64,000 bases of DNA, from positions 157,357 through 221,356 of the IMG/VR virus record IMGVR_UViG_3300027770_001980; one strand, given 5' to 3'. A program made the position numbers and the translations under genes. Numbering within the stretch: position 1 is the stretch's first letter; each line of letters begins with the position of its first letter. Positions 3,551 through 20,141 of the stretch are shown here, piece after piece. Below the pieces are notes generated by a model, which was not told the DNA's origin, searched no databases, and worked only from the letters and a program-made list of their open reading frames with translations.

Positions 3551-6500
3551 ATGGCGACAGCAATAGCAATTACAGAAGATTTTGTAACCAAGAGTGGTTT
3601 GATTGTACAAGGCACCGGTACGGTTACAAGTTCTACAGGGCAAACCACAGCTTTGCAGGTCAATGGTGGTGCTGCCATCGCCAAGAATTTAATTGTAGGA
3701 ACTACCGCTAATATTAATGGAACATTATCAGTTGGAACAACTGCCACTATTGGTGTTGACGCAATCGTTAATAGAAATTTAATAGTATCAGGAAACTCGA
3801 GATTAGTTACAGTTACTGCAACCGGCGTTGTATCTATTACTAACGCAACTGCGGCTACAACAGCCAGTATCGGTGCATTGATAATTACAGGTGGCATTTA
3901 TGCTGGGAAAAATGTTGTAATAGCAAGCACAACATCAAATACCGGAACAACCATTAATAATGCATTATATGTAGCCGGCGGCATTGGTATTGGTAAATCA
4001 TTGGTAGTTGATGGAGAAACATTATTTAAAGGTGATGTTACCTTTGTTGGATCATCGACTTTTCTTTACAGTGTAAATTCTCTATACACAGATAACATTA
4101 TTGAATTACATGTACCACCGGCTCCTCAAACAACTTGGTCAGTCGACGATGGTAGGGATATAGGATTACGATTCCACTATTATAATGGTGCAGATCAAAA
4201 TGCCGGATTGGTGTTAGCGCATGATACAAAATACTTAGAATGGTATGACACCGGAACAGAGGACGGCTCTGGTGATTTTGTAAGTGGTACATACGGAACC
4301 TTTAAAACAGGTGTTATACAATTAGTAAGCGGTACAGCCAGCTCAAATACCTACAGTGGAGATTTGATAGTTGCTGGTGGTGTTGGTGTTGCTGGTGATA
4401 TCTATGTTGGTAATTCTGTTAATTCTCCATTATTTGTTGGTAATCTCACTGGAGTAGTTACTACTGCTACTAATCTCGAAGGTGGGTCAGCAGGAGCATT
4501 ACCTTATCAAACCTCAGACGGTGCTACTACATTCCTTTCAATTAGTTCCGATGGATATGTTCTAACAATCGATAGTGGATTGCCTACATGGGCTCCTATA
4601 CAAACAGTTGTAGTTGATTATGCTAATACCGCTACTAATTTAAAATACGGTGATGATATGGAAATTCCATATCAGTTAAGTCCGGGAGTGACCGAATTTA
4701 ATTTCAATTTAAGATACGATCATGTCAACAGTACGTTACGAACAGTTAATGCGGTATTTACTGGAACCGACGACTCATCAAGTGTTGGTAGTGGAGCATT
4801 ACAAGTTGTAGGTGGTGTTGGAATTGGTGGTAACATCTACGTTGGTAGTAATGCTTCAATAGTTGGAAATTTAGAAATAGATGGTGGTGATATCACTACA
4901 CTAAACACCACTATCAATTTAATAAACACTACCGCAACTACTGTCAATTTTGCCGGAGAAGCTACTGCTATTATTGTTGGATCAACTGATGGTTCTACAA
5001 CTATAAGAAATTTAACAACTATCTCAAATACTGCATCCGCTGTAAGTACTGTGACCGGAGCATTGCAGGTAGTAGGTGGAGTTGGAATACAAGGTGCTAT
5101 TTATATTGGTGGCACATCTACTTTCTTAAGCGATTTACTTCCTGAAAATTCGCGTGTAAATCTTGGGTCGCTGGCATCACCTTTCAAAGATTTATATCTA
5201 AGTGGTAATAGTTTATATGTTGGAAGCATTACAGTTTCTTCTAACGGATCGGCCATGGTGGTTTCAAGTTCTGCAGGACCTGCAAATTTACAAGCACCAT
5301 TTATTGCTGCTACAACTACCACTAATGCAGAAAGCACAAATACTGGTGCATTACAGGCAGTCGGTGGTGCTGGTATAGGTCGAGATTTATGGGTAGGTGG
5401 CAATGAAACATTATTAGGTGATTTAGAAATACGTGGTGGCAATCTTACTACAGATCAAACTACATTTAATTTATTAAACACTAACGCTACCACAGTTAAT
5501 TTTGCTGGCGCAGGAACCGTTATTAATATCGGCTCCACCAGTACTGGCTACACAAACATTAATAATAGAACCACTGTAACTAATACCGCAGTGGCATCAA
5601 GTACTGTTACTGGTGCCCTTGTTGTAGCCGGCGGCGTTGGCATCGGAAAATCTTTATGGGTAGGTGGCAATGAAACTCTATTAGGTGATTTAGAAATACG
5701 TGGCGGCGATCTTACTACAGATCAAACTACATTTAACCTAATTAATGCAGTTTCAACCACGGTTAATTTTGCTGGTGCAGGAACTGCTATTACTATTGGT
5801 TCAACTAATGGAACCACTATAATACGTAATAGAACAACTGTAAGTAATAGATCAGCTGCATCAAGTACTGTTACTGGAGCTCTGGTAGTTGGCGGCGGAG
5901 TCGGTATTGGTGGCGCATTATATGTCGGAGCAGCAAGCTATATAGATAGTTCAATAATAATAACCGAAGCAACTTTAGGACTATACGGAGTAAGCTCACT
6001 AACCGCAGGAACAGATACTCAAGTTAGTACCTCAACTGGTCCGGTAGTTATATGGAATAACAGTACATTACAGACTATAACAGATAGAGATAATTCAACT
6101 ACAAATATTATATCAATTACCAATACTACAGATTCAACCGGAACATCAAACGGAGCACTAACTGTATCTGGTGGAGTTGGTATTTCTAAAACATTATATG
6201 TTAATACGGTTACTGTTGTAAGTCGTACTGCATCAATTTCCACTAACACAGGAGCATTAGTAGTTGCAGGTGGTGTTGGGATTGCTGGAAATATATACCT
6301 TGGCGGAATAATGTATGGAATTGCAAATACCGCCACCAATGTAGCCGGCGGTGCCGCTGGAAAAATTCCTTTCCAAATTAGTACCGGTACTACAGGATTT
6401 TTTGGGCCAGGGACAAATGGTCAAATATTAATTAGTAAAGGAACAACTTCATCTGGTCATTTATTTGTTGATACATCTACATTTTTAATAGGATATTCTG

Positions 6501-8770
6501 TCAATGTAGCAGGTGGAACATCTGGGTCATTACTGTATCAATCATCCGCTAACACTACGAATTTTATTGGTATAGGTGCAGATGATACATTCTTAAGAAG
6601 TGATGGTTCGACTGCTACTTTTGTAACTACAAGCTCAATGTTTGTTGGCCGCGCATCATTAACAAATAATGTAGCAGGCGGTGTTAGTGGATCACTGCTA
6701 TATCAAAGCAATCCAGACACTACAACATCGTTGCCTATAGGAACAAACGGACAAATTTTACAATCCGACGGATCAAATCCTGCTTGGGTTGACTTTCCGG
6801 GCGGTGTGGTTATACCAAATGCTGCTAATGTTGGTATCAATAACGATACAAGCAATGCAGATACAAACTATATTACATTTGTAAATACCTCAACTGGGCA
6901 AACTGGAATTAGAGTATCCAGTCCTTCTGGTATTACATATGTTCCAAGTACAGGAAATATGGGTATAGGTGTAAGCACCGCAACAACTAAATTAGAAGTC
7001 GGTGGCGGCGTAAGAATTTCCGGTGCTACTACAATAACTAATACCACGGTAGCATCGAGTACTACCACTGGTGCTTTACAGGTAGCAGGTGGAGTTGGTA
7101 TTGGTGGTACGGCATATATTGGTGGAAATATCAATGTAGTAGGTACTGGAACATTTTCTGGCGATATTGTGATAAATGGTGGTGATATCACTACAAATCA
7201 ACCCACATTTAACCTAATTAATGCAGTTTCAACCTCGGTTAATTTCGCGGGAGCAGGAACCGCTATCAGTATAGGGTCTTCGTCAGGCATCACAACAATA
7301 AAGAATAATTTAACAGTTGTTGGAAATATAACTGTTCAAGGTAAAACTACTATTGTTGATAGTACAGTTACTAATTTTGCTGATCCTGTAATAACATTAG
7401 GTGGTTTAGCAAACGATGATCCTCTTACTACCAATGATAATTTTGATAAGGGAATCGCATACAAATACTATTCCGGTAGTGCTAAATTAGGATTTTTTGG
7501 ATATACACAGGGTTCTGGATTTTTAACATTTATTCCTGATGCTACAATCGTTAATAATGTAGTAACCTCGGGTGCTAAAGGTGCTATAGATATAAATCTT
7601 GCAGGTGGAACATTACAATCAATTCCATATCAAAGTAATTTCAATGTTACCTCCTTCTTGGCAGCCGGTAATGCTGGAGAATTATTACAAACCAATGGAA
7701 CGGGTTCTGCTCCAAGTTGGGTACCGACAGCTGGATTGACAGCAGGTAATGCATCTACCTCTACACATTTATCAGGCGGTAATGCTGCACAAATACCATT
7801 CCAAACATCTATAGGAAGAACAAGTTTCATTAGTACAGGTACAGCAGGACAAATACTGGTCAGTGCCGGAACTACATCAACTGGTCCAGTGTTTACAAAT
7901 ACATCCAGCATTAGGGTAGGTTTTGCCACCGTTGCTAACAATATAGTATCGGGTAGTTCAGGACAGGTGTTATTCCAATCAACAGGAAGTACCACTGGAT
8001 TTGCAGGACCTGGATCAATTGGCAACTTATTGGTCAGCAATGGTCCTACCTCGGGCGGTCCTACTTTCCAAAGTACTTCAACAATATTAGTAGGATATGC
8101 TGTAAATGTACAAGGTGGAACGTCGGGTCAATTAGTATTTCAATCAACAGGAAGTACTACATCATTTGCTGGTCCAGGTACAGCAGGACAAATATTAATC
8201 AGTGCTGGAACCACATCAACTGGTCCTGTGTTTACCAATACCGCAACATTCTTAGTAGGCTATTCCGTAAATGCATTTAACCTAACAGGTGGTTCAACTG
8301 GATCGGTTGTATATCAAAGTGCAACCGGAACCACTGCAATGTTAGCACCGGGTGCTGCTGGAAATATATTGCAAACTAATGGCCCTGGCTTGGCACCATC
8401 CTGGCTATCTGTAAGTGGACTAACAGCAGGTAATGCTACTACTTCCACTAATTTAGCTGGCGGTACAGCAGGACAAATTCCATATCAACAATCTCCTGGA
8501 ATAACCAGTTTTATTAGTACCAGTACCGCAGGTAATATATTAGTCAGTAATGGAACAGGTGCTCCGACATATAACAATACATTAACATTAGCAGGCACCA
8601 CTGCTGCAACTAATACCACAACGGGTGCATTACAAGTTAAGGGTGGTGTTGGTATTGGTGGTAGTGTTTATGTTGGTAACAGAGTTGGATTTGTTAATGC
8701 CAGTAATGTTAGCACAGTCTATCAATATTACAATGCTACAACTAATAGTTTAGATACGGTGTTTGGATAA
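3551..8770 (+). CDS. Long tail fibre-like protein (1739 aa, Thr/Ser/Gly-rich repeats)
   Basis: Strong AAGGA RBS. Many GALxVxGGVGIG and NxAGGxxGxxxYQ repeats. Confidence 0.75.
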   Translation: MATAIAITEDFVTKSGLIVQGTGTVTSSTGQTTALQVNGGAAIAKNLIVGTTANINGTLSVGTTATIGVDAIVNRNLIVSGNSRLVTVTATGVVSITNATAATTASIGALIITGGIYAGKNVVIASTTSNTGTTINNALYVAGGIGIGKSLVVDGETLFKGDVTFVGSSTFLYSVNSLYTDNIIELHVPPAPQTTWSVDDGRDIGLRFHYYNGADQNAGLVLAHDTKYLEWYDTGTEDGSGDFVSGTYGTFKTGVIQLVSGTASSNTYSGDLIVAGGVGVAGDIYVGNSVNSPLFVGNLTGVVTTATNLEGGSAGALPYQTSDGATTFLSISSDGYVLTIDSGLPTWAPIQTVVVDYANTATNLKYGDDMEIPYQLSPGVTEFNFNLRYDHVNSTLRTVNAVFTGTDDSSSVGSGALQVVGGVGIGGNIYVGSNASIVGNLEIDGGDITTLNTTINLINTTATTVNFAGEATAIIVGSTDGSTTIRNLTTISNTASAVSTVTGALQVVGGVGIQGAIYIGGTSTFLSDLLPENSRVNLGSLASPFKDLYLSGNSLYVGSITVSSNGSAMVVSSSAGPANLQAPFIAATTTTNAESTNTGALQAVGGAGIGRDLWVGGNETLLGDLEIRGGNLTTDQTTFNLLNTNATTVNFAGAGTVINIGSTSTGYTNINNRTTVTNTAVASSTVTGALVVAGGVGIGKSLWVGGNETLLGDLEIRGGDLTTDQTTFNLINAVSTTVNFAGAGTAITIGSTNGTTIIRNRTTVSNRSAASSTVTGALVVGGGVGIGGALYVGAASYIDSSIIITEATLGLYGVSSLTAGTDTQVSTSTGPVVIWNNSTLQTITDRDNSTTNIISITNTTDSTGTSNGALTVSGGVGISKTLYVNTVTVVSRTASISTNTGALVVAGGVGIAGNIYLGGIMYGIANTATNVAGGAAGKIPFQISTGTTGFFGPGTNGQILISKGTTSSGHLFVDTSTFLIGYSVNVAGGTSGSLLYQSSANTTNFIGIGADDTFLRSDGSTATFVTTSSMFVGRASLTNNVAGGVSGSLLYQSNPDTTTSLPIGTNGQILQSDGSNPAWVDFPGGVVIPNAANVGINNDTSNADTNYITFVNTSTGQTGIRVSSPSGITYVPSTGNMGIGVSTATTKLEVGGGVRISGATTITNTTVASSTTTGALQVAGGVGIGGTAYIGGNINVVGTGTFSGDIVINGGDITTNQPTFNLINAVSTSVNFAGAGTAISIGSSSGITTIKNNLTVVGNITVQGKTTIVDSTVTNFADPVITLGGLANDDPLTTNDNFDKGIAYKYYSGSAKLGFFGYTQGSGFLTFIPDATIVNNVVTSGAKGAIDINLAGGTLQSIPYQSNFNVTSFLAAGNAGELLQTNGTGSAPSWVPTAGLTAGNASTSTHLSGGNAAQIPFQTSIGRTSFISTGTAGQILVSAGTTSTGPVFTNTSSIRVGFATVANNIVSGSSGQVLFQSTGSTTGFAGPGSIGNLLVSNGPTSGGPTFQSTSTILVGYAVNVQGGTSGQLVFQSTGSTTSFAGPGTAGQILISAGTTSTGPVFTNTATFLVGYSVNAFNLTGGSTGSVVYQSATGTTAMLAPGAAGNILQTNGPGLAPSWLSVSGLTAGNATTSTNLAGGTAGQIPYQQSPGITSFISTSTAGNILVSNGTGAPTYNNTLTLAGTTAATNTTTGALQVKGGVGIGGSVYVGNRVGFVNASNVSTVYQYYNATTNSLDTVFG
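5386..5736 (+). repeat. Near-identical ~84 bp in-frame duplication in the fibre gene (about 5386-5469 and 5653-5736)
   Basis: tttatgggtaggtggcaatgaaac...cttactacagatcaaactacatttaa occurs twice with few substitutions (LWVGGNETLLGDLEIRGGxLTTDQTTFN). Confidence 0.85.
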
Positions 8771-8991
8771 TGCCTATAGTAGCATCACGTTTGACCTCAA
8801 CAGGTACATTGTTTATCAGTGGAGAATTTAATGAAGTCACTACGTCGACTATACGTTTAACCACCACTACTTATTATGCCGCAGGGTTTGATGAGGTGTC
8901 AATTCGTGGTGGCAGTGTAGCAAAGCGTGAAACAACTACAGGTACATTACTGGTATCTAATGGATTTGATGAAGTTAACAAACCCGTTTAA
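8770..8991 (+). CDS. Small virion/fibre-associated protein
   Basis: 73 aa with three GxF(D/N)EV repeats; ATG overlaps the upstream stop (TAATG). Confidence 0.55.
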   Translation: MPIVASRLTSTGTLFISGEFNEVTTSTIRLTTTTYYAAGFDEVSIRGGSVAKRETTTGTLLVSNGFDEVNKPV

Positions 8992-9012
8992 CATTTAGGT
9001 AAATATTATACT

Positions 9013-12000
9013 ATGGCACAATTACTATCAGGAACAAGAATATACGGAACAGGAACTGTTGATTCTCAATTGTTTATTAACGGAAATACTGCTGCTACCA
9101 GTACAAATACTGGTGCTTTACAAGTTGTTGGTGGTGTTGGAGTTGGTGGTAATCTGTTTGTAGGCGGCACATTATATGCATCCGCAGTAACTGGAAATAT
9201 TACTACCGCTACGAATTTAGCAGGCGGCAACGCCTCACAATTAGCATTCCAAACTGCCCTGGGTGTTACCAGTTTTGTCAGTTCGGGTACCGCAGGACAA
9301 ATACTGGTCAGTGCTGGTAGTACATCAACTGGCCCGGTATTCACCAATACATCAACCATTAGGGTAGGATTTGCTACCAATGCTATAAATGCTTCAACAC
9401 TATTAAGTGGAACTGCACAATCAATTGTATATCAATCAAGTACAGGAACAACCGCTTTCTTATCTGCAAGTACATCCGGTTATCTGTTATCAACACAAGG
9501 TACCGGTGCTGCACCTGCATGGATTTCTCAAGCAAGTCTAACAGCAGGTGGTGTTGATACGGTAAAAACTATAGAAAATGCAACGAATTCTATTTTTTAT
9601 CCAACTTTTGTAAATTCTAATAATGTGTCTGCAACTGGCGAGTCTTTATATACCACCAGCAGTTTTAGTATCAACCCATATACTGGCTATGTAACAATTG
9701 GTACAAGTTCTACTATTAGCGGTTCTGTCTCTGCTCCGTTAACTGTATATAAAGATGGTTCACAAGAATCAAACACTCCTGTTGGAACATATAATGTTGC
9801 TCAATTTGGTAATTCGGCCGGTTCTCGAGGCGTTGGAATAAACTATGACCCAACTAATGTAACCGGTGGATTGTATAGTTTTGGAATTAATTCTAATTTA
9901 ATTTTTTATACCCCAACTGGTTCAACATACAAAGAACGTATGCGCATTTCTACCGGCACCGTTGGAATCGGAACGGTTGGATTAGTTACAACTGCTCCAT
10001 TGCATGTTGCAGCACCACTTTCAACTGGAACTATTGTTACAGTTGGAATGTTTACACAAAACATTGATACAGCACTAACTACTGGTTCAGGAGTAAGGCT
10101 TGTTCTCGCAGCCGGTAACAGCCAGTCAAGGGCTGCAATTATCGAAGCCGCTGTTGAAAGTGGCCTTAACGCACACTACCTTGCATTCTCTACTAATGCC
10201 AGCGGTGCGAGTCCAACTGAGAAGATGCGTATCACCTCCGCCGGTGGGATTGCATTTGGTGGAGCAACTAACTATGGTGCTACTGGAAATGTATTAGTTA
10301 GCCAGGGCGATGCTGCTCCACAATGGACTGCTATAGGAGCAATTGCTGCCGGTCAAGCAACCACTGCAACCAACTTAGCAGGCGGCAGTGCTGCACAGAT
10401 AGCATTCCAAACAGCTATAGGAAAAACCAGTTTTGCAGGTCCTGGCACAGCAGGACAAATACTGGTCAGTGCTGGTAGTACATCAACTGGCCCGGTATTC
10501 ACCAATACATCAACCATTAGGGTAGGATTTGCTACCAATGCTACAACATTAGAAAATGGAACTGCCCAATCAATTGTATATCAATCAAGTACAGGAACAA
10601 CCGCTTTCTTATCTGCAAGTACATCCGGTTATCTGTTATCAACACAAGGTACCGGTGCTGCACCTACGTGGATTTCTCAAGCAAGCATAACAGCAGGTGG
10701 TGTTGATACGATAAAGACAGTGGGTCAAGCAAGCATTGCTGATTATTATCCAACTTTTGTAAATTCTAATAATGTGTCTGCAACTGGCGAGTCTTTATAT
10801 ACCACCAGCAGTTTTATTATCAACCCTGCGACAAAGGAAATATCTGTTAATGGAACAGGTAGATTTACTAGTCCAGCAAACGGAACAACAGGTGCGGTTG
10901 TATTACGAGCAAATACTACAAATACAGCAACAACTTATCTACAGTGGTCCAATAATGCGAGTACTATTCAATATGGTGCCATAGGTGTTACAAGTGCGAC
11001 TGATATAGTATTTTTAAACAGTAGTGTTGAGCGTATGCGTATCACCTCCACTGGTGCTATTGCATTCAGTGGAGCAACTAACTATGGATCAAGTGGAAAT
11101 GTATTAGTTAGCCAGGGCGATGCTGCTCCACAATGGACTGCTATAGGAGCAATTGCTGCCGGTCAAGCAACCACTGCTACTAATTTAGCAGGCGGTACAG
11201 CAGGACAACTACCTTATCAAAATGCCCCAGGTGATACCAGTTTTGCAGGTCCTGGCACAGCAGGACAAATACTGGTCAGTGCTGGTAGTACATCAACTGG
11301 CCCGGTATTCACCAATACATCAACCATTAGGGTAGGATTTGCTACCAATGCTACAACATTATCAAGTGGAACTGCACAATCAATCGTATATCAATCAAGT
11401 GTAGGAACAACTGCTTTCTTAGCAGCCGGTACTTCAGGACAAGTATTACAAACAAATGGAACTGGCTCTGCACCTACATGGGTATCAACTGGATCATTGA
11501 CTGCCGGTCAAGCAACCACTGCTACTAATTTAGCAGGTGGTACAGCAGGACAATTAGCATTCCAAAATGCCCCAGGTGATACCGGTTTTGCAGGCCCTGG
11601 CACAGCAGGACAAATACTGGTCAGTGCTGGTAGTACATCAACTGGCCCGGTATTCACCAATACATCAACCATTAGGGTAGGATTTGCAGATAATGCTTCA
11701 ACATTATTAAGTGGAACTGTACAATCAATCGTATATCAATCAAGTACAGGAACAACCGCTTTCTTATCTGCAAGTACATCCGGTTATCTGTTATCAACAC
11801 AAGGTACCGGTGCTGCACCTGCATGGATTTCTCAAGCAAGTCTAACAGCAGGTGGTGTTGATACGGTAAAGACCGTGGGTCAAGTAACCAGTTCTACTTT
11901 TTATCCAGTATTCGTTAATTCCAATAATTCATCTGCAACTGGTGAGTATTTGTATACCACCAGTAGTTTTAGTATTAATCCTTATTCCGGACATGTTGGT

Positions 12001-13191
12001 ATTAGTAAAACAAACCCATCTGCTCCATTAGAAATAGGTGATGAAAATCAATTCAGTGGTGATCCGTGGATCCGTATTAGATCAACTGCCAGTAACATTC
12101 GTTCCGCTTTCATACAACTCACAGGTAGACAGCTTGGAGTTGACGAAACCTGGAGTATGATAGCAGCAGGGTCTGGCCTTGGAAATGCTGGATTACGTTT
12201 TACACGAGGTGATTGGGTTACTGGAACAGTAGCAATGGTGATTGATTCCAGCGGCAACGTGGGAATTGGAACCGGTCCAACACAGACAATCGCATCAACA
12301 TATGGTTCCGATTTAGTTGTACATAGGGGTGCGACACGCGGAGGCGGCGGTGCTGATACCAGAATAGCAATATCAAACACCAGTACAACTGGTGCAAGCA
12401 ATCTACGGTTTTATACCAGTGCTACTTCGTATCTAACCGCAGAAATTGCGGTAGGTGGTCCAGGATATACATCATGGGCCGGGGCACTTAGTTTGAACTT
12501 TCTTGCTGTTCAAGGCGGTCCAATAGCATTTCATAAAGGTGGCAACACCCCGGGTTCTTCTGGTAGCGCAACTGAACTGATGCGTATCACCCCCAATGGT
12601 GCTATTGCATTCAGTGGAGCAACTAACTATGGATCAAGTGGAAATGTATTAGTTAGCCAGGGCGATGCTGCTCCACAATGGACTGCTATAGGAGCAATTG
12701 CTGCCGGTCAAGCAACCACTGCAACCAATTTAGCAGGTGGTACGGCCAACGCGATCCCTTATCAATCAAGTGCAGGAACAACCGCTTTCTTGGCAGCAAC
12801 TACATCCGGTTATGTGTTAGCAACACAAGGTACTGGATCTGCACCTACATGGGTTTCTCAAGCAAGTATAACATCAAGTGTTGGAGATTCATTAAAAACA
12901 GTTTCAACAGCTACCTCGGCAAAGTTTTATCCAACATTTGTAAATAGTAACAACGCAAGTCCAACTGCCGAGCAGTTATACACTACTTCTTCTATCAGTG
13001 TAAATCCCGGTACAGGTGATGTATCTGCACCACAATTCATAGCAAACAATGCTATGATACTCAATACATCAACCGTGATGAACAGTTATACTATACCCAC
13101 TGGATATAATGCTATGAGTGTTGGACCTATTAGTGTTTCAAACGGTGTTACCGTAACAATCAGTAGCGGACAACGATGGGTTATTCTTTAA
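9013..13191 (+). CDS. Tail fibre-like protein (1392 aa) with a modular repeat architecture
   Basis: TAAATA box at 9000-9005. ExMRI, GALQVVGGVGVG and ATNLAGG repeats; C-terminal motif IPTGYNAMSVGPISVSNGVTVTISSGQRWVIL. Confidence 0.8.
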   Translation: MAQLLSGTRIYGTGTVDSQLFINGNTAATSTNTGALQVVGGVGVGGNLFVGGTLYASAVTGNITTATNLAGGNASQLAFQTALGVTSFVSSGTAGQILVSAGSTSTGPVFTNTSTIRVGFATNAINASTLLSGTAQSIVYQSSTGTTAFLSASTSGYLLSTQGTGAAPAWISQASLTAGGVDTVKTIENATNSIFYPTFVNSNNVSATGESLYTTSSFSINPYTGYVTIGTSSTISGSVSAPLTVYKDGSQESNTPVGTYNVAQFGNSAGSRGVGINYDPTNVTGGLYSFGINSNLIFYTPTGSTYKERMRISTGTVGIGTVGLVTTAPLHVAAPLSTGTIVTVGMFTQNIDTALTTGSGVRLVLAAGNSQSRAAIIEAAVESGLNAHYLAFSTNASGASPTEKMRITSAGGIAFGGATNYGATGNVLVSQGDAAPQWTAIGAIAAGQATTATNLAGGSAAQIAFQTAIGKTSFAGPGTAGQILVSAGSTSTGPVFTNTSTIRVGFATNATTLENGTAQSIVYQSSTGTTAFLSASTSGYLLSTQGTGAAPTWISQASITAGGVDTIKTVGQASIADYYPTFVNSNNVSATGESLYTTSSFIINPATKEISVNGTGRFTSPANGTTGAVVLRANTTNTATTYLQWSNNASTIQYGAIGVTSATDIVFLNSSVERMRITSTGAIAFSGATNYGSSGNVLVSQGDAAPQWTAIGAIAAGQATTATNLAGGTAGQLPYQNAPGDTSFAGPGTAGQILVSAGSTSTGPVFTNTSTIRVGFATNATTLSSGTAQSIVYQSSVGTTAFLAAGTSGQVLQTNGTGSAPTWVSTGSLTAGQATTATNLAGGTAGQLAFQNAPGDTGFAGPGTAGQILVSAGSTSTGPVFTNTSTIRVGFADNASTLLSGTVQSIVYQSSTGTTAFLSASTSGYLLSTQGTGAAPAWISQASLTAGGVDTVKTVGQVTSSTFYPVFVNSNNSSATGEYLYTTSSFSINPYSGHVGISKTNPSAPLEIGDENQFSGDPWIRIRSTASNIRSAFIQLTGRQLGVDETWSMIAAGSGLGNAGLRFTRGDWVTGTVAMVIDSSGNVGIGTGPTQTIASTYGSDLVVHRGATRGGGGADTRIAISNTSTTGASNLRFYTSATSYLTAEIAVGGPGYTSWAGALSLNFLAVQGGPIAFHKGGNTPGSSGSATELMRITPNGAIAFSGATNYGSSGNVLVSQGDAAPQWTAIGAIAAGQATTATNLAGGTANAIPYQSSAGTTAFLAATTSGYVLATQGTGSAPTWVSQASITSSVGDSLKTVSTATSAKFYPTFVNSNNASPTAEQLYTTSSISVNPGTGDVSAPQFIANNAMILNTSTVMNSYTIPTGYNAMSVGPISVSNGVTVTISSGQRWVIL
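9292..11687 (+). repeat. Module A: 83 bp identical direct repeat x4 (9292-9374, 10450-10532, 11260-11342, 11605-11687)
   Basis: gcaggacaaatactggtcagtgctggtagtacatcaactggcccggtattcaccaatacatcaaccattagggtaggatttgc, compared base by base in four places. Confidence 0.92.
9427..11820 (+). repeat. Module B: 90 bp identical direct repeat x3 (9427-9516, 10576-10665, 11731-11820)
   Basis: gtatatcaatcaagtacaggaacaaccgctttcttatctgcaagtacatccggttatctgttatcaacacaaggtaccggtgctgcacct occurs three times. Confidence 0.92.
10284..12722 (+). repeat. Module C: 84 bp identical direct repeat x3 (10284-10367, 11094-11177, 12639-12722)
   Basis: tggaaatgtattagttagccagggcgatgctgctccacaatggactgctataggagcaattgctgccggtcaagcaaccactgc occurs three times, each after an ExMRIT motif. 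Confidence 0.92.
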
Positions 13192-13202
13192 TATAGTCAA
13201 TT

Positions 13203-15158
13203 ATGCCAAGTTTTATTAATGCCTCAACAACAGGATCGGGCGGACTTATCGCATTTGGTGATAATTCTGGAATATTAGATTTCCAAACTGGTAGCAGTAC
13301 AAAGATGCGTATTGACTCCAGCGGGAATGTGAGCATTAATACAAGCACCGCAGTTTCTCAAAGTAAACTAACAGTAAACGGTTCTATCAGTTCAACTGGA
13401 TCTGACGGTAGATTTGGCAGCGGTGGTCAACGAGCAATATTTGATATTGAACAAATTGGAATATGGACTGCACGAATCGGAGCAACATCCGGAGGTGTGA
13501 CTACAGGAACTAATCTTGGATTTTATGTAGGAACCAGCGCTGGCAGTAACTCTCAGGCTATGCTCATTACTTATAATGGCGCTATTGCATTTGGTGGTAC
13601 AACTAATTATGGATCAACCGGAACAATTTTACAGAGCAACGGCAATGCTCCTCCAACCTGGGTCGATACATCGAGTATAGTAGCAGGTTCAACCCCATTG
13701 ACAAATACATATGTTGGATATGGTGCCAGTGGCGTATTATCAGGAAGTAGTAATTTAACATGGAGTGGATCACAGTTATATATTAATGGTGGATCACTAT
13801 CAACTCTTACTAATAGTCAAATAATTGCACAGCGTTTTCAAGTCTCAAGTACCAACGCTGACTATTTAGAAATTAGCAATGTTCGTGGCACAACAGGCGC
13901 AGGATGGAATCAAGCAGGTTGGAGAATTCAACAAAAAATTGATAGTACCTGGATGGCATACATTCAGTTTAACGGTACAAGAACTGGCACTAACGATAGT
14001 GGAATGAGTTTCGGTACTGGTAGTACTACTGCCTTTGCAAATACTGTCAGTGAGCGTATGCGTATTGATCAGGACGGCAACGTGGGTATCGGACCAAACG
14101 GTACTGATGCTAATGTTAGATTGTTGGTACAGAATAGTGGTAATCAGAATGTCGCTTGGTTTAAAAATTTCAGTGGAACAAGAGCAGCACCAATAGAAAA
14201 TGCCGATTGGCCATGGCCTGTTATGACATTGTCTGGATATGGCAATTTTTACCGACAAAATATGCTGTCATTTACATTGCCAAATGATGCCAAGAGTCAA
14301 ACAAACGGTATATATCACACAGACGATAGTGTTTGGAATTTTTCACTCAATGGTGTAACAGGTGTAAATAGTTGGGATAATGCGTCTGGCAGCACCACTC
14401 CTGCTACAACATCAACCACTTCTACCGGTCTACAATTATTAGGTCCTGGTAATTTACGTTTAGGCACCACCGCCTCCAACAGTATATTTTTTAGAACTTC
14501 CAACGTTGATAGGGCTACAATTCATCCTAACGGTTATATGAGTATAGGCGGCAACTTAGCATCATCAAGCCAGTTGAATATCAGTGGTAGTAATCAAAGG
14601 GGTGGCGCTTCCTACCACGATTTCTTATATGTAAACAGTACATATGCCAGCGTCACAACTGGTAGCAAATCTTTTAGATTAGGTGCCGCTGGCACGGTAG
14701 AAATAGTCAATGCTGCATATACTTTGGTGATATTCAATCTTACAGATGCCGGGGCACTAAGTGTAACTAATGAAATTACAGCATATTCTTCAGATAAGAG
14801 ATTAAAGACCGACGTTAGACCTATTGATAATGCTATCGATAAAGTAAAATCATTAAACGGTATTATCTATAAATGGAATGATTTAGCAAATAGTTTGGCA
14901 GGATATAACATCAATGAAGATTTAATTGGATTATTTGCACAAGATGTACAAGCAGTATTACCACAAGCAGTAAGACCTGCACCATTTGACCAAGAAAATG
15001 GTGCAAGCAAATCCGGTGAAGATTATCTAACTGTTCAATATGAAAAACTTGTTCCATTATTAGTAGAAGCGATCAAAGAACAACAGGCTATTATCGAACG
15101 ACAACAAAAACAAATAGATCAGATTCAAGCCATGCTGGCAGAACTGCTCAATAAATAG
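13203..15158 (+). CDS. Tail fibre protein with a C-terminal intramolecular chaperone (peptidase S74) domain
   Basis: C-terminal AYSSDKRLKTDVRPIDNAIDKVKSLNGIIYKWN...IGLFAQDVQAVLP...YEKLVPLLVEAIKEQQ followed by a coiled coil. Confidence 0.88.
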   Translation: MPSFINASTTGSGGLIAFGDNSGILDFQTGSSTKMRIDSSGNVSINTSTAVSQSKLTVNGSISSTGSDGRFGSGGQRAIFDIEQIGIWTARIGATSGGVTTGTNLGFYVGTSAGSNSQAMLITYNGAIAFGGTTNYGSTGTILQSNGNAPPTWVDTSSIVAGSTPLTNTYVGYGASGVLSGSSNLTWSGSQLYINGGSLSTLTNSQIIAQRFQVSSTNADYLEISNVRGTTGAGWNQAGWRIQQKIDSTWMAYIQFNGTRTGTNDSGMSFGTGSTTAFANTVSERMRIDQDGNVGIGPNGTDANVRLLVQNSGNQNVAWFKNFSGTRAAPIENADWPWPVMTLSGYGNFYRQNMLSFTLPNDAKSQTNGIYHTDDSVWNFSLNGVTGVNSWDNASGSTTPATTSTTSTGLQLLGPGNLRLGTTASNSIFFRTSNVDRATIHPNGYMSIGGNLASSSQLNISGSNQRGGASYHDFLYVNSTYASVTTGSKSFRLGAAGTVEIVNAAYTLVIFNLTDAGALSVTNEITAYSSDKRLKTDVRPIDNAIDKVKSLNGIIYKWNDLANSLAGYNINEDLIGLFAQDVQAVLPQAVRPAPFDQENGASKSGEDYLTVQYEKLVPLLVEAIKEQQAIIERQQKQIDQIQAMLAELLNK

Positions 15159-15178
15159 GAAGCCGACAAGGGAAAATT

Positions 15179-15397
15179 ATGTCAGTATTACCAGCAACAG
15201 GCGCAGCAATATCGATGGGACGAACACAACAAGCATACAATAATGTAGCAGCAGGAACCGGTGCGGCGGCCACTGGTGGCAGCACCTCCGTTAGATTGAG
15301 TGCATCGTTAGGTGCAAGTTATGGTGGTAGGGCTGCTGGAACAGCTATTAGTTTTTCTTCAACCTTCGGTGGCAAAACAACCCCTTATACTTACTAA
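15179..15397 (+). CDS. Small Gly/Ala/Thr-rich fibre-associated protein
   Basis: 72 aa; TAAATA at 15152-15157 and an AGGG RBS upstream. Confidence 0.5.
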   Translation: MSVLPATGAAISMGRTQQAYNNVAAGTGAAATGGSTSVRLSASLGASYGGRAAGTAISFSSTFGGKTTPYTY

Positions 15398-15399
15398 AC

Positions 15400-15858
15400 A
15401 TGAAACTTGAACAAATTGATGATGTAATATCCAAAATTAAAATTGGACCCAGTAAATGGGAATTAGATACTATTGTTTGGCATGACAGATTGTCTAATCC
15501 AGTAACTTTGGTAAATTTTTTACTTCGAATACAAATGTTATCTGAAAAAAATTCCGAATCTCAAGAACTAACTCATCTTTTAGAATTATTAGATGAAATG
15601 GAAGAAAGCGATATCAATGAGCTAATTGAGAGATCCGAAGAAGAAGCACACGATGCATTTATTGAAAATTTGGCAAAAAAAAGTGCTCTTGAAGTTTTAA
15701 CTAACGGCAGAGTGGACATTGAAACATTAAATACCTCTTGCAAACTCAGCCCTAATGACTTTATACTATGTGCTAAACGAACCCAAGATTTACTAGTTAC
15801 TATTCATGGACTGGTGATCAAAGGCGAGTCACTTAGTGAAGATGTCGCAGGCGCATGA
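15400..15858 (+). CDS. Hypothetical acidic, helical protein
   Basis: 152 aa ORF tightly coupled to both neighbours. Confidence 0.5.
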   Translation: MKLEQIDDVISKIKIGPSKWELDTIVWHDRLSNPVTLVNFLLRIQMLSEKNSESQELTHLLELLDEMEESDINELIERSEEEAHDAFIENLAKKSALEVLTNGRVDIETLNTSCKLSPNDFILCAKRTQDLLVTIHGLVIKGESLSEDVAGA

Positions 15859-16511
15859 AAACAAAATCAGTATTCTCATCCAGTAGTTGGTCAACAAAAA
15901 AAAGTAAATTAGCAGTTTGCATACCTTGCAGGGATACTCTGCATTCTGCACATGCTATGTGTTTAGTTGAATTAGTCAAATTCAACACCATGAACAATAT
16001 AGACACACATGTGTTTATGGATGCAAGTACTGTATTGCTAACCCAAAGAGAACGATTGGCCATGATGGCATCGGATCTTAATGCAGAATATACACTTTGG
16101 TTAGATAGTGATATGACATTCCCTTCTACTACTGCGGTGAGATTGATGTCACACAATGAAGAAGTTGTGGCAGCAAATTATGTCAAGCGACAACTGCCTG
16201 CTAAGGGTGTGGCCTATGAAAAAATATGGGATTGGCAAAATCCGTTAGGGTTTGATATACAAGATCAACTAGTTCCTGTAGAGGGAATAGGAATGGGGTG
16301 TATGTTAATGAAAACCGATATTTTCCGAGAAATTCCACAACCCTGGTTTGAATTCCAATGGACTCCTGAATCTAATGATCATCTAGGGGAAGATATGATA
16401 CTATGTCAAAAGATTGCCAAGACTGGTAGAACTGTTAAAGTTGATACTGTATTAAGTCAAGAACTAAGACACCTTGGTACCTGGGCGTTTGGACCAGATC
16501 TGTTAAAGTAA
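15855..16511 (+). CDS. GT-A fold (GT2-like) glycosyltransferase
   Basis: LAVCIPCRD N-terminal strand, WLDSDMTFP (DxD motif), GIGMGCMLMK and GEDMILC motifs. Confidence 0.75.
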   Translation: MKTKSVFSSSSWSTKKSKLAVCIPCRDTLHSAHAMCLVELVKFNTMNNIDTHVFMDASTVLLTQRERLAMMASDLNAEYTLWLDSDMTFPSTTAVRLMSHNEEVVAANYVKRQLPAKGVAYEKIWDWQNPLGFDIQDQLVPVEGIGMGCMLMKTDIFREIPQPWFEFQWTPESNDHLGEDMILCQKIAKTGRTVKVDTVLSQELRHLGTWAFGPDLLK

Positions 16512-16943
16512 TTCTAATAATAATTCTATCTTAGCACGAATTATCTTGCTACTAAAAGAATTCTTCACACCTCTGTGCAATGGTTTAGGCCATTGATCAT
16601 AACTAACCCATGCATATCCATCATGCTCATCATTTAGTGATGGGATAAATTCTCTATCAACAACTAATACATAGGTATTATATTGAAACTGTTGATCGTT
16701 ACTTACAAATAATTCTAAAGGTACAACTTTTTTAATAGTAGGTGTTCGACCTACTTCTTCTTGTATCTCTCTTGTAAGTGCATCAAAGGGAGTTACATCT
16801 GACGGTTCTTTTCTACCTCCGACCAATCCCCATGTGCCGGCAGTATTAATCTTGGTCCTTGATAATAGTAAGAATCTTTTGGTATCTTTTGCTAAAAATA
16901 AACCGCCACTACACACCACTTGATTTACAGTATTAATCTCCAT
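16503..16943 (-). CDS. Nudix hydrolase
   Basis: Nudix box GGRKEPSDVTPFDALTREIQEEVG and a downstream EHDGYAW motif. Confidence 0.9.
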   Translation of the reverse strand: MEINTVNQVVCSGGLFLAKDTKRFLLLSRTKINTAGTWGLVGGRKEPSDVTPFDALTREIQEEVGRTPTIKKVVPLELFVSNDQQFQYNTYVLVVDREFIPSLNDEHDGYAWVSYDQWPKPLHRGVKNSFSSKIIRAKIELLLELL

Positions 16944-18346
16944 AGTGCTGCATCATAGACGCCCTCATAACTTTTACTCCATGCTCCATTTTCCCACTTA
17001 TACTGTGTGTTAGTATATGAGTTAGTTATGTATATCACATCTGTATGATCAACAGAACTGAAAATCACTTGCCAAGAATCTCCATTCCATTCAATTATAT
17101 CATTAGCAAATGCTTGAAAATCATCCCCATTATTATTTTTCCAAGCGTTTGGTCCTGTATATCCAGGTGTTCCAAATTGAATTGTATTATTAATGTCGTT
17201 GAGTATTAGATATCTGGTTCCAGCAGCAACTGTTTCGGGATTATAAGTTTCAGGATCTATAACTGCATCTATGGTTCCTCTGCCCACAGGATTATAGTTA
17301 CTGCTTATAGTTGTATTTGTAGGCACACCCGGACTATCGGGGTCGATATTTAATTTCATAATAAAATCATCATTTGGGTCCAAGCTAATGTAAGCAATAA
17401 CTTCGTTACCACCAGAGTGCCCAAATCGTAATTGACTTAAACTTGCTCTAAATCTTCCCGGATGTAAATCTAATATTTTTAACCAAGAAACAGAATTAAG
17501 TGGAGAACTGACATCTATATTTTCCCCAAGGCCGTTGGAATTTATTAGTCTTGCGGTATTATTCAATACCAACAAATCATATTTTCCTGCTGTAACTACT
17601 ACACCAGCATCTGGTGTTATACCACCGAACATATCAGCAGCACCGACTTGGCTGTATTCATTAGCAATAGTACCTTGTGCATTAGAAGAAAATATATTAG
17701 ATATAATCTTAGTAATGATTCCTAATTTCTTAACTTTAGCAGGAGGGGTTATCCAAATAGGAGTTTCAAAAGTCATAGTCATTATATCGATGTCTTCGGT
17801 GGTACCCTGTGGAATTTGTCGACTTGTCCAATTTACATCATCTAACCTTACTGAACTTAAACTGGTCCAGTCGAGATAATTATCAGTGGTTTGTATCTCA
17901 AAACTGGGTGTGAAGAAAACTGCTATCTGTTCAAATATTTGTAATTTTTGTTCATTGCTGGTAGTCCATATATCTGCATTCATTGTTAACTTATATGGAG
18001 TTGGCATGATACGTTCTATGGTATAATTACTACCTTGATTGTTTGTATACAATCCGGATCCATCATCAAATGCACGTTCTCTAACTTGTATCTTGCCGAC
18101 AAATGTGGGATCCTGCATACGCTCTCTATCAAATTCTAATTCCTTGATGTAGCAAGCAATGAACGGAGCACTGGGCATTGTGTTCTCACTATTCTTTTTA
18201 AGTATCTGCCCAACTTGTCGAGTCATATCACCATACCGAACAGGCACCTGGACAAGATTCCCTTTGGCATCTTTGTAAGCATAGTTGCTCATCAGTTGAA
18301 TAAATTGTGCCAAGTATCTACGTACTTGACCGTCATAAAAATAATC
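16925..18346 (-). CDS. gp15: Tail terminator/sheath stabiliser (T4 gp15-like); start codon unresolved
   Basis: DYFYDGQVRRYLAQFIQLMSN...VPVRYGD...RMQDPTF...PTPYKLTMNADIW...QIFEQI is a gp15-like pattern. The frame is open upstream of TTG 18313 only as far as the TAA at 18365-18367. Confidence 0.7.
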   Translation of the reverse strand, partial: DYFYDGQVRRYLAQFIQLMSNYAYKDAKGNLVQVPVRYGDMTRQVGQILKKNSENTMPSAPFIACYIKELEFDRERMQDPTFVGKIQVRERAFDDGSGLYTNNQGSNYTIERIMPTPYKLTMNADIWTTSNEQKLQIFEQIAVFFTPSFEIQTTDNYLDWTSLSSVRLDDVNWTSRQIPQGTTEDIDIMTMTFETPIWITPPAKVKKLGIITKIISNIFSSNAQGTIANEYSQVGAADMFGGITPDAGVVVTAGKYDLLVLNNTARLINSNGLGENIDVSSPLNSVSWLKILDLHPGRFRASLSQLRFGHSGGNEVIAYISLDPNDDFIMKLNIDPDSPGVPTNTTISSNYNPVGRGTIDAVIDPETYNPETVAAGTRYLILNDINNTIQFGTPGYTGPNAWKNNNGDDFQAFANDIIEWNGDSWQVIFSSVDHTDVIYITNSYTNTQYKWENGAWSKSYEGVYDAALWRLIL

Positions 18347-18364
18347 CGATTTAGTACAACGGCG

Positions 18365-18931
18365 TTAAACCGAAGCCTCCTTAAGTTGTTTTCGAGCCAA
18401 TGCTCTCTCAGTTATTGCTGTTTTTCTTGCATTAGCAATTTCTGGTCCGTATATTTCTTCCCAAGTCATACCTAATTTTTTACCTTTGTTAGCAGAATTT
18501 TTGCCTTTATTTGGATGAGACTTACCCTTCATAGGGCCGCCGTCTTTTCTTTTCCAACCTCCATCTTTACCTTCTGCTTTTCGTCTAGCATGTGCTATTT
18601 TTTGAGCACTGCTCATTCGTTGTTTACTTTCTTCTGAATGCAGTTTATTTCCGCCTGCTTGTCGAATATTAAATCCATTATTAATAGAATCAAATTTTTC
18701 TACATATTTTCCTTCAAGCATGTTTAATTCTTCTAAAGAGTTAGCCGTTGTAAGAACTTCAAATGTAAATGCATCTATTCCGTATTTTCTTAAGGCATTA
18801 TGAAAATGATACTCTCTTGTGGTATATCGACTATCTGCAATATGCTCTAATCGTCGTTGATTAGGATTTTGTATAGTTTGACCTATATAGCATCTGTTAG
18901 ACTCTATATGTGTAAATTTATAAATGTGCAT
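18365..18931 (-). mobile_element. Free-standing GIY-YIG homing endonuclease (Seg-like) with a basic C-terminal DNA-binding region
   Basis: HIYKFTHIESNRCYIGQT (GIY-YIG variant), R..EH, FHNALRKYG, E..YV, GFN; NUMOD3-like LHSEESKQRMS and GKSHPNKGK. Confidence 0.88.
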
Positions 18932-18932
18932 G

Positions 18933-20141
18933 TTAGTTATCTGCTCTTGGTTTTAGTACTTGACTCAACGCTTGACGTTCTTGAACAACTTCTCCAGCAA
19001 TGGTTGCAGTATTGATATTATTAACAAAACTTGATTTTAGTTTTCTTCTTACCAATATCGGATTGTCAGTTTGTGTCTCTCCCAACATACTGGTTGTCAT
19101 TCTAACATTATCTTCATATTTAATCCAATGTTTTCCATCATGCCTAAACAGCCTATTAGGCAAATAATCTGTTCTTAGAAAGAAATCACCCAATTGAGGA
19201 TTTGCAGGAAAATTAATTCCAAATCCATATGCTGATCCATTTGGCGGAATTCCATCACCTGTTAGATATCCAATAAAATAATTTTTAGAAGGTGTATTTA
19301 AAACAGCCGATGCATCTAAATATGACATTGACATATCGCCGCTGGCATCTGTATTTGAAATAGACGCATCTGCAATAGATGCTAATTGCGTTCCTGTATT
19401 TTCTATAGGAATTACAAAAAATTGTTCTGTTTTATAACCGCTTGCTTCAACATCTGCTTGTGCCTGTTGAATAATTTGATTGTTAATCTCAATATTTTTC
19501 TTGTAGGTTGACAATAAATCACGTAATGTACTTCCGTCTTCGGCACCCGAATCTGCATCAAGAATCTCTTTAAATTCTTGACTATCGACCAACGGAACAC
19601 ATTTAGCTCTAATTAGGTGAGGGTACCATGTTTGACTATATCCCGATGCTGGCCTATTAACTTCTGATACTACATAAAATCTCTTTAGTGCTACAATACT
19701 ATCATCTAATGCGTATTCATCTTTCTGGTGTGGTAATTCTATAACATCACCGGACATTATTTTTCTACCCAAAGCATCGTAACTACTTCTTAAGTGGAAA
19801 CTAATCATAACATTATCATTGTTTAAGAACAATCCAAATTGACTTAAATTAAAATCTAAATCTTGCAAGGTATAAATTCCACGGATAACATACACATCCG
19901 GGTCATAGTGTCTATCTCTATTTTCCATGAATAGCAAATCCTGTATTCCTAACTCAGGAATAGCAGTTGCTGAATTGTTTGGAATAGTAGGGCTACTGGT
20001 TCCTTCTAATGGATCAACGGTCCCTAAATATTTGTGTATATAGACATCAGTTCCGCCAACTTGAAATTCTTCGTTGATCACTCGATCTATAAATTTAAAA
20101 TCATTGCCCTTTTCGGGACGGTACATAGAAAGTCTTGGCAT
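18933..20141 (-). CDS. gp14: Neck/head-closure protein (T4 gp14-like)
   Basis: MPRLSMY...IDRVINEEFQVGG...DLLFMENRDRHYD...LSQFGLFL...GDVIELP; adjacent to the gp13-like and gp15-like genes. Confidence 0.65.
   Translation of the reverse strand: MPRLSMYRPEKGNDFKFIDRVINEEFQVGGTDVYIHKYLGTVDPLEGTSSPTIPNNSATAIPELGIQDLLFMENRDRHYDPDVYVIRGIYTLQDLDFNLSQFGLFLNNDNVMISFHLRSSYDALGRKIMSGDVIELPHQKDEYALDDSIVALKRFYVVSEVNRPASGYSQTWYPHLIRAKCVPLVDSQEFKEILDADSGAEDGSTLRDLLSTYKKNIEINNQIIQQAQADVEASGYKTEQFFVIPIENTGTQLASIADASISNTDASGDMSMSYLDASAVLNTPSKNYFIGYLTGDGIPPNGSAYGFGINFPANPQLGDFFLRTDYLPNRLFRHDGKHWIKYEDNVRMTTSMLGETQTDNPILVRRKLKSSFVNNINTATIAGEVVQERQALSQVLKPRADN

Follow-up and report, generated by a model that had tools for sequence, protein, structure and literature searches.

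Organization of the locus

The analyzed window is a 64,000-nt stretch of the IMG/VR virus record IMGVR_UViG_3300027770_001980 (positions 157,357 to 221,356), and all features described here lie on its minus strand. A virion structural protein gene of 402 aa (18933-20141; phrog_11591, E 5e-80), which is syntenic with a structural protein of PA5oct, ends at a TAA. One base later, the ATG at 18931-18929 opens a 188-aa GIY-YIG homing endonuclease (HEG) ORF (18365-18931), which ends at the TAA at 18367-18365. The HEG was identified by a profile match to PF01541 (24.6 bits against a cut-off of 22.6) and by four homing-endonuclease PHROGs, the best being phrog_314 (E 4e-25). Full-length homologues of 169-188 aa occur at the same site in relatives. 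The next in-frame codons are CGC CGT TGT ACT AAA TCG (18364-18347), none of which is ATG, GTG, TTG, CTG or ATH. These are followed 18 nt after the HEG by the conserved N-terminus DYFYDGQVRRY of a T4 gp15-type tail sheath stabiliser/completion protein, which extends from Asp2 to its stop (16925-18346; 473 aa).

The segment upstream of the first canonical in-frame start (TTG 18313) is the true N-terminus of gp15. The Pfam profile PF16724 (T4-gp15_tss) matches from its first position at the Y of DYFY (E 1.6e-25, profile positions 1-213), and phrog_227 and phrog_11196 are also matched. Homologues in PA5oct, Atu_ph07 and Phosso start MNYFYDEQ or MALDYFYDGQ, and T4 gp15 (4HUD) aligns from its YFY at residue 4. 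The HEG and gp15 share a frame, and removal of 18347-18928 (582 nt) joins the HEG ATG to GAT. AAGGAGG lies at 18382-18376 and CTTCGG at 18375-18370. The observation made in the initial annotation, that this gp15-like gene has no in-frame start for its N-terminus, is therefore confirmed.

Distribution of the cassette in related viruses

The same startless junction recurs in 107 related viral contigs from many metagenomes, comprising 57 sequence variants, and a later scan added 5 new variants that follow the same rule. A third pattern scan was too loose, as most of its hits were unrelated GC-rich phages and only about 10 were informative. Alignment with endonuclease-free relatives had been proposed as a check on the junction, and about 90 contigs with the empty site read stop-ATG|GAY TAY. 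In these relatives, the stop of the upstream gene abuts or overlaps the gp15 ATG, giving translational coupling. The inserted cassette (18347-18928, 582 nt) thus lies exactly between the ATG of gp15, which now starts the HEG, and codon 2. Presence and absence also differ among close relatives. The empty locus L016 (L labels denote individual related sequences) is the nearest relative of the cassette-bearing L013 and L015, and its flanks are 93-94% identical to those of L013, which carries a cassette remnant. The element is specific to this locus, since 77 of 78 hits of the 17-mer GGAGGCTTCGGTTTAAC lie just upstream of gp15.

The comparative data show that the junction is not an assembly or sequencing error. 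TCG recurs in 21 variants and in dozens of assemblies from different samples, and TCG-CAA variants contain no homopolymer. L037, a 94-96% identical strain, has the same TCG junction but carries a 441-nt in-frame HEG deletion. About 26 independent HEG deletions, leaving remnants of 5-70 aa, keep the frame from the ATG to the stop, whereas two do not. Some cassettes have no upstream ORF (L204, L209, L082, L164, L101, L240 and L257).

A megablast search of the locus against cultured phages found no match, and protein relatives there are at most 35% identical, so no cultured or proteomically studied close relative exists. The gp15 of PA5oct has been verified by mass spectrometry but has a normal ATG. 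No second copy of gp15 is present in the 221-kb contig, which is only about 62% complete.

The 3' module of the cassette

The 3' end of the cassette has a constant layout. It begins with a Shine-Dalgarno (SD) sequence, AAGGAGG (18376-18382), whose GGAGG core is nearly invariant and is retained where it is no longer coding, as in L204, L209, L082, L164 and L101. SD-like motifs precede 31% of the ORFs of the genome against a background of 9%. A predicted hairpin follows (18357-18375), with a 4-bp core (CGGU/GCCG), a closing C-G pair and the loop UUAAC, which holds the HEG stop. The last HEG codons (K E A S V stop) overlap the SD and the 5' strand of this hairpin. The hairpin shows covariation, with 5 of 7 pairs changing on both sides; 0 of 500 shuffles reached the observed values, and slid controls were much lower. 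It is predicted as the minimum free energy (MFE) structure in most variants. However, the hairpin is weak (-3 to -10 kcal/mol), and for several variants its energy is no better than that of shuffled sequence. An alternative helix (18345-18374), in which UUCGGUUUA (18374-18366) pairs with UAAAUCGGA (18353-18345), is about isoenergetic with the hairpin and would sequester TCG and the first bases of codon 2. This alternative is the MFE structure for the window, L187, L052 and L192.

The hairpin is followed by a 7-nt A/U-rich spacer (TACTAAA, 18350-18356) and one codon (TCG, 18347-18349) just before codon 2. The distance from the hairpin base to codon 2 is 10 nt in all 57 variants, and the order GGAGG, C, hairpin holds in every variant. 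The codon before codon 2 is TCG in 21 variants, ATC in 16, ATA in 12 and ATT in 8, and the 5 additional variants are likewise limited to these four codons. A canonical start is absent at this position in all 62 variants. In several variants an in-frame stop three codons upstream leaves this codon as the only candidate, for example TGA AAA GCT ATA. The only variant without a loop stop (L101/L112) also has no upstream ORF. Of the 21 TCG variants, 20 have an upstream ORF ending in the loop, and the remaining one has the stop of the upstream gene next to the SD.

The gp15 N-terminus is translated in frame in the cassette-bearing phages. Among TCG-type cassettes, DYFYDGQ shows 127 synonymous and 0 non-synonymous pairwise differences, and codons 4-8 and 12 are invariant in amino acid but carry many synonymous codons. 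TCG is the rarest Ser codon, at 5.7% of Ser. The contig has 41 tRNAs, none of which has a CGA anticodon, and a scan for sigma-70 promoters and terminators found no promoter on the minus strand between the HEG and gp15.

A proposed cassette-borne initiation site for gp15

The explanation favored here, with moderate confidence, is that a free-standing GIY-YIG homing endonuclease cassette inserted exactly between the ATG and codon 2 of the essential tail sheath stabiliser gene and restores gp15 expression with its own 3' module. In this view, the endonuclease uses the old gp15 ATG and its coupling to the upstream structural gene. The hairpin would fold out about 19 nt, so that the SD, which is 26-27 nt upstream in linear sequence, comes to lie about 7 nt from the codon preceding codon 2. 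Ribosomes that finish the endonuclease ORF or its remnant at the loop stop would sit with the SD at initiation-like spacing, and they or new subunits would start gp15 weakly at the non-AUG codon, UCG in this window and AUA, AUC or AUU in sister cassettes.

The cassette and its boundaries, the conserved geometry, the restricted codon set, the conserved frame of the upstream ORF and the in-frame translation of the gp15 N-terminus are demonstrated by the comparative analysis. In contrast, initiation at the codon before codon 2, its coupling to upstream termination and tolerance of a weak codon because few gp15 copies are needed are inferences from sequence alone, as are enhancement of initiation by the hairpin and homing of the endonuclease into the empty site.

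The model has difficulties. UCG shares only its third base with AUG, the window has no near-cognate codon in frame, and how UCG could serve as a start is unresolved. A plain initiation model does not explain why canonical starts are absent in every variant, although ATA to ATG is a single transition; endonuclease self-immunity or dosage control are only guesses. Moreover, E. coli initiation rules may not apply in the host of this phage.

The interpretation offered in the initial annotation is partly supported. It correctly proposed that gp15 has lost its start and that the endonuclease ATG joins exactly to the gp15 N-terminus, and the AAGGAGG and the structure at the stop, to which it drew attention, are functional signals by the comparative evidence. 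Of the mechanisms it listed (stop read-through, ribosomal bypass, non-canonical initiation, RNA processing or a one-base error), only non-canonical initiation survives. The cUUCGg motif, which had been likened to the UUCG hairpin of T4 gene 60, is not a tetraloop here but the 5' strand of a hairpin whose loop holds the stop codon.

Gene callers will annotate gp15 in these phages as truncated or as a pseudogene, whereas the comparative data show that the full N-terminus is made. The case shows a way for a selfish endonuclease to sit on an essential gene without killing it, by stealing the start codon and bringing a portable initiation module. The more than 60 natural variants provide a ready-made mutational series covering four codons, 18- and 19-nt gaps, upstream ORFs of 0-188 aa and hairpin variants. 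This series allows direct tests of how SD tethering, hairpin-shortened spacing and upstream termination permit initiation at non-AUG codons, including the non-near-cognate UCG. The complete absence of canonical starts suggests a link between endonuclease target recognition and the translation signal of the host gene.

Relation to known systems

Split SD-hairpin initiation regions are found in T4 genes 38 and 25, in which the SD lies 22-27 nt upstream of the start and an intervening hairpin brings it to 5-11 nt (PMC3014915). The present element has a comparable geometry, with a linear distance of 26-27 nt that becomes 7 nt after a 19-20 nt hairpin. The T4 sites use AUG and belong to the gene itself, whereas this site is carried by a mobile element, holds the stop codon of the preceding ORF in its loop and always uses AUA, AUC, AUU or UCG.

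The mobile cassette of T4 mobA and gene 60 (Manning and Atkins, bioRxiv 10.1101/2022.08.31.505936) reportedly combines an HNH homing endonuclease with a 50-nt bypass element (Bonocora et al., 2011), and the cassette described here is a counterpart to it. In both, an endonuclease travels with a short structured RNA element that restores expression of the essential gene it interrupts, the element contains a stop codon, a stem-loop, an SD and an A/U-rich 3' part, and insertion occurs repeatedly at one site in many myoviruses. Here, however, the insertion is at the start codon rather than inside the gene, the endonuclease is GIY-YIG, there are no matched take-off and landing codons and no nascent-peptide signal, and the element is inferred to work as an initiation site.

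Free-standing seg/mob endonucleases of T4-like phages, including mobE, which overlaps the nrdA stop in T4 (PMC2988022), likewise comprise intron-less GIY-YIG endonucleases between or inside essential genes, with a start that abuts the stop of the upstream gene (UAAUG-type coupling) and presence/absence polymorphism among close relatives. Genes can also be split by endonuclease insertion, as in Aeh1 nrdA. Known seg/mob genes leave the start codons of neighboring genes intact or split the gene into two ORFs with normal starts, whereas here the endonuclease captures the ATG of the host gene.

Natural non-AUG starts in bacteria include the AUU of infC and pcnB. In measurements of initiation from all 64 codons, AUA, AUC and AUU were weak starts, at 1-2% of AUG on a high-expression plasmid and 0.02-3% on a single-copy BAC, and other codons gave 0.01-1% (bioRxiv 10.1101/063800). 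Such weak starts can suffice for low-copy proteins. The present case differs in that an essential structural gene would use AUH systematically and, in a third of variants, UCG, which is not a near-cognate codon and for which no natural precedent is known.

Alternative explanations

Start-codon-independent initiation is possible but unlikely. The SD-hairpin geometry, or the alternative helix ending at UCG, would set the frame rather than pairing with initiator tRNA, as in an IRES pseudoknot or a post-termination restart, and the first residue could be Ser or Asp rather than Met. The constant 10-nt distance whatever the codon, the exact retention of TCG in 21 variants despite its rarity, the pairing of UAAAUCG(GA) with (UU)CGGUUUA in a helix ending just before codon 2, and the upstream ORFs of the TCG variants support this view. 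However, 36 of 57 variants carry AUH, which pairs at two of three positions with initiator tRNA, as ordinary near-cognate initiation predicts. There is no covariation support for the alternative helix, because its 5' strand is nearly invariant, and no bacterial precedent is known. A broader form of this view, also tentative and unlikely, is that an essential phage structural gene is naturally started at UCG, with the frame set by this geometry or helix together with a terminating upstream ribosome, that initiator tRNA might not be involved at all, and that the exclusion of AUG, GUG and UUG is enforced by the endonuclease as self-immunity of the occupied site.

Programmed bypass, as in T4 gene 60, is doubtful. 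Ribosomes would take off at the codon before the loop stop and land just before codon 2, producing a fusion protein. The association with a mobile endonuclease, the stop codon within a structure with an SD and an A/U-rich 3' part, the conserved frame of about 26 remnants and remnant cassettes of 42-71 nt, close to the 50-nt gap of gene 60, are consistent with bypass. However, the take-off codon (GUU, or AGU in L079) never matches the landing codon (AUH or UCG), and GUN is never seen at that position. The 5' strand of the hairpin lies upstream of the stop and would be melted at take-off, unlike in gene 60. The upstream ORF is the HEG, a remnant or absent rather than the N-terminal part of the same protein, and remnants as short as MEASV cannot carry a nascent-peptide signal. 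With the intact HEG, the product would be a 188-aa fusion on a conserved N-terminus.

RNA processing, by a self-splicing intron or by a protein endonuclease plus ligase, is improbable. Excision of the cassette would restore the empty-site sequence, and phage HEGs often live in group I introns. However, an Rfam scan of 17800-19500 found no intron, ribozyme or other family at E up to 10, and the HEG ORF fills the whole insert. The remnants, including functional-looking ones of only 42-45 nt, are too short for a ribozyme and share no 5' sequence beyond the ATG, and the preference for AUH at the junction has no role in splicing.

A downstream start at TTG 18313, the first canonical one, or at ATG about 18290, with loss of the first 12 or more residues, is very unlikely. 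Codons 2-12 are under strong purifying selection in cassette-bearing phages, the YFY motif is conserved as far as T4 gp15, and the TTG is not conserved, other variants having CTC, CTA, GTA or ATC at codon 13.

Stop read-through or frameshifting to an HEG-gp15 fusion is contradicted, despite the shared frame in this window, by a stop-to-codon-2 gap of 18 nt in most cassettes but 19 nt in nine TCG variants, by an in-frame TGA three codons before codon 2 in many variants and by cassettes without an upstream ORF. A one-base error, in which deletion of the C of ATCG would give ATG GAT, is contradicted by the recurrence of TCG.

Three further routes to the gp15 frame were considered and rejected. 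Initiation at the overlapping AUC followed by a +1 slip on the U-run does not fit because L005-type cassettes lack the U-run and codons 2-3 are conserved. A UUG/CUG-UAC-UAA mini-ORF with a +1 shift is absent from ACATCG and ATCTCG variants. Hopping from UCG to UCG was rejected because L005-type upstream ORFs have GCG there and ATH-type cassettes share the same upstream UCG.

Genomic context of gp15

The window is the last 64 kb of a 221-kb IMG/VR viral contig estimated to be about 62% complete. It has 39% G+C, the contig has 41 tRNA genes, and the gp15 is at most 35% identical to those of jumbo myoviruses such as PA5oct, Atu_ph07 and Phosso. On the minus strand, a 402-aa virion structural protein gene (20141-18933; phrog_11591) is followed by a 188-aa GIY-YIG homing endonuclease (HEG, 18931-18365), the gp15-type tail sheath stabiliser and a NUDIX gene. 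The NUDIX hydrolase gene (16503-16943, minus strand) overlaps the end of gp15 by 19 nt, and the same gp15-NUDIX synteny is found in PA5oct-type phages.

The initial annotation reported that gp15 lacks an in-frame start for its probable N-terminus, and this observation is confirmed exactly as described. After the HEG stop (TAA, 18367-18365) there are six in-frame codons with no canonical or near-cognate start, and GAT TAT TTT TAT GAC GGT follows from 18346. This segment is the real N-terminus of the family, as the Pfam profile begins at the Y of DYFY, cultured homologues begin MNYFYDEQ or MALDYFYDGQ, and T4 gp15 aligns from its own YFY.

A conserved mobile cassette

IMG/VR was scanned with the gp15 protein, a back-translated N-terminus, the 17-mer at the HEG stop and a looser hairpin pattern, which together gave about 290 loci. 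About 90 contigs carry an empty site in which the stop of the upstream gene abuts or overlaps ATG, followed at once by GAY TAY. In contrast, 107 contigs representing 57 distinct sequences carry an insert between that ATG and codon 2, and the looser hairpin scan added five more new variants. These variants are related by descent and recombination, and therefore counts of variants overstate their independence. The empty contig L016 is the nearest relative of the cassette-bearing contigs L013 and L015, at 88-94% identity in the flanks. Contig L037, which comes from another assembly and is 94-96% identical to the window in its flanks, has the same TCG junction together with a 441-nt in-frame deletion inside the HEG. 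The 17-mer spanning the SD and hairpin occurs 78 times in the collection, and 77 of those occurrences are directly upstream of a gp15 gene. The startless junction is therefore a heritable, widespread feature linked to an endonuclease that shows the presence/absence pattern of a homing element.

Other arrangements are also found at this position. In contigs L129, L100, L055, L065, L078 and L105, a different Cys-rich small ORF (...CPDCEC.LCQQGKEFN-stop) sits directly upstream of gp15 with a normal TAATG overlap, which is another insertion at the same hotspot that leaves the ATG intact. In contig L091, DYFYDGQ continues an upstream reading frame (...PDGQRTQ-DYFYDGQ) without a stop or start, and this may be an N-terminally extended or fused gp15.

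Architecture of the 3' module

All variants align without ambiguity. The module comprises GGAGG, then C, a hairpin of 19-20 nt with a 4-bp core, a closing C-G pair and loop (U)UUAAC, seven A/U-rich bases, one codon (referred to here as XXX) and then codon 2 of gp15. The distance from the hairpin base to codon 2 is 10 nt in every variant. Five of the seven hairpin pairs show changes on both sides, no shuffle out of 500 reaches the observed values, and slid controls score far lower. The hairpin is nevertheless weak, at -3 to -10 kcal/mol. In the lineage of L194 and L166, codons 2-3 are CUC CAU, which gives CCUCC complementary to the GGAGG of the cassette, and the predicted fold sequesters the SD in this lineage only.

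XXX is TCG in 21 variants, ATC in 16, ATA in 12 and ATT in 8. It is never ATG, GTG, TTG or any other codon, and the five later variants obey the same rule. In many variants an in-frame stop lies only three codons upstream, e.g. TGA AAA GCT ATA or TGA ACT AAA TCG, and translation of gp15 in this frame can therefore begin only within those three codons. The gp15 N-terminus is translated in cassette-bearing phages. Among TCG-type DYFY variants there are 127 synonymous and 0 non-synonymous pairwise differences in DYFYDGQ, and Gly7 uses four codons and Arg10/11 use five or more. A terminator-like stem followed by a T-rich tail (18309-18330, minus strand) lies inside the first 40 nt of the gp15 coding sequence, although it is a consensus match only.

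The upstream ORF

The HEG always starts at the captured ATG and ends with (K)EASV-stop, the stop lying in the hairpin loop. In contigs L074, L043, L072, L085 and L093, however, the loop is CUAAC, so the HEG frame has no stop there and the HEG ORF ends at a TAA inside the 7-nt spacer, 5 nt before codon 2. The HEG has been deleted internally many times, leaving upstream ORFs of 5, 8, 9, 10, 11, 12, 14, 15, 17, 18, 19, 28, 33, 44, 45 and 63 aa that still run in frame from the ATG to the loop stop. About 26 independent in-frame remnants were counted against two out-of-frame ones (L206 and L215), whereas one third in frame is expected by chance.

Several cassettes have lost the upstream ORF altogether (L204, L209, L082, L094, L101/L112, L164, L240 and L257). 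In most of these the stop of the upstream gene lies within about 10 nt of GGAGG, whereas in L094 it lies about 35 nt upstream. GGAGG is kept although it is no longer coding. The only variant with no stop in the loop (L101/L112) is also one with no upstream ORF. In the L238-type cassettes (L238, L255 and L265), an ORF in another frame reads through the hairpin without meeting the loop stop and ends at UAG overlapping the AUA start (AUAG), a different way of coupling. On this evidence, a terminating ribosome is therefore always delivered close to the module, and it is stopped before it can run over the gp15 start in a wrong frame.

Most likely mechanism

The module has the architecture of the split initiation regions of T4 genes 38 and 25, in which a hairpin shortens an SD-start distance of 22-27 nt to 5-11 nt (PMC3014915). 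Here, 26-27 nt becomes 7 nt. AUA, AUC and AUU are measured weak start codons in E. coli, giving 1-2% of AUG on a high-expression plasmid and 0.02-3% on a single-copy BAC, whereas other codons give 0.01-1% (bioRxiv 10.1101/063800). The N-terminal residue was methionine for the non-AUG codons examined by mass spectrometry, AUC among them (bioRxiv 10.1101/063800). In T4, gp15 forms a hexamer, so about six copies per virion are needed. In empty-site phages gp15 has no SD and depends on coupling, and a strong SD with a weak codon may reproduce that low output. When the upstream ribosome has the stop in its A site, GGAGG lies 5 nt from the P-site codon, an initiation-like spacing that could hold the ribosome for a restart 15-16 nt downstream. 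The cassette and its conserved geometry are established by the sequence comparison, whereas initiation at XXX and the restart step are inferred from sequence alone.

Alternative mechanisms

The interpretation in the initial annotation is partly supported. Of the possibilities it raised (stop read-through, ribosomal bypass, non-canonical initiation, RNA processing or a one-base error), non-canonical initiation alone agrees with the variants. Bypass of the gene 60 type is unlikely. The codon before the stop (GUU, or AGU in one lineage) never matches XXX, the 5' strand of the hairpin lies upstream of the stop, five-residue upstream ORFs cannot carry a peptide signal, and the intact HEG would give a 188-aa fusion. 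Splicing is likewise improbable, as there is no Rfam hit, the ORF fills the insert, and remnants of 42-71 nt persist. A downstream start is very doubtful because codons 2-12 are under selection and the TTG at 18313 is not conserved. Read-through and frameshift are contradicted by the distance from the loop stop to codon 2, which is 18 nt in most cassettes but 19 nt in nine TCG variants, by further in-frame stops that follow, and by cassettes without an upstream ORF. The recurrence of the junction across contigs rules out an error.

Relation to known systems

The locus works like a seg/mob free-standing endonuclease combined with a T4-type split initiation region. Conceptually it parallels the mobA/gene 60 cassette, in which an endonuclease travels with an RNA device that rescues the interrupted gene, although it fails the defining tests for bypass, for an intron and for read-through. 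No description of an endonuclease that captures the start codon of a host gene and supplies a non-AUG initiation module was found, albeit in a limited literature search. What distinguishes this locus from the known systems is the systematic non-AUG, and partly non-near-cognate, inferred start of an essential gene, and the natural series of variants makes the question testable.

The codon preceding codon 2

Two features of XXX are not explained by the proposed mechanism. The first is UCG, which is exact in 21 variants, in three spacer contexts (AAATCG, ACATCG and ATCTCG), and before GAT, GAA or CAA, yet is the rarest Ser codon in this genome. This points to a constraint on the nucleotides rather than on the amino acid. 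The ATCTCG group has an in-frame AUC one codon upstream, whereas the other groups, including the window, have no near-cognate codon at all. In the window, UAAAUCGGA can pair with UUCGGUUUA. This predicted helix is as stable as the hairpin, ends just before the rest of codon 2, and would be opened by a ribosome finishing the upstream ORF. It may only gate access or may help to set the frame, and sequence alone does not distinguish these roles. The second feature is the total absence of ATG, GTG and TTG, although the third base of ATH varies freely. Selection by the endonuclease, as self-immunity of the occupied site, or dosage control is suspected, and both remain hypotheses.

The phage tRNA complement was also examined. 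A cluster of 41 tRNA genes (positions 5650-18512 of the genome contig, G000:C1) covers most amino acids, and none of these genes has a CGA anticodon. One of three phage tRNA-Met(CAT) genes (G000:C1:18439-18512, outside the window) has an unpaired 1:72 position (U.U), which is an initiator hallmark, but lacks the three consecutive G-C pairs of the anticodon stem that bacterial initiators use for P-site and IF3 selection. A phage initiator-like tRNA could bear on non-AUG starts.
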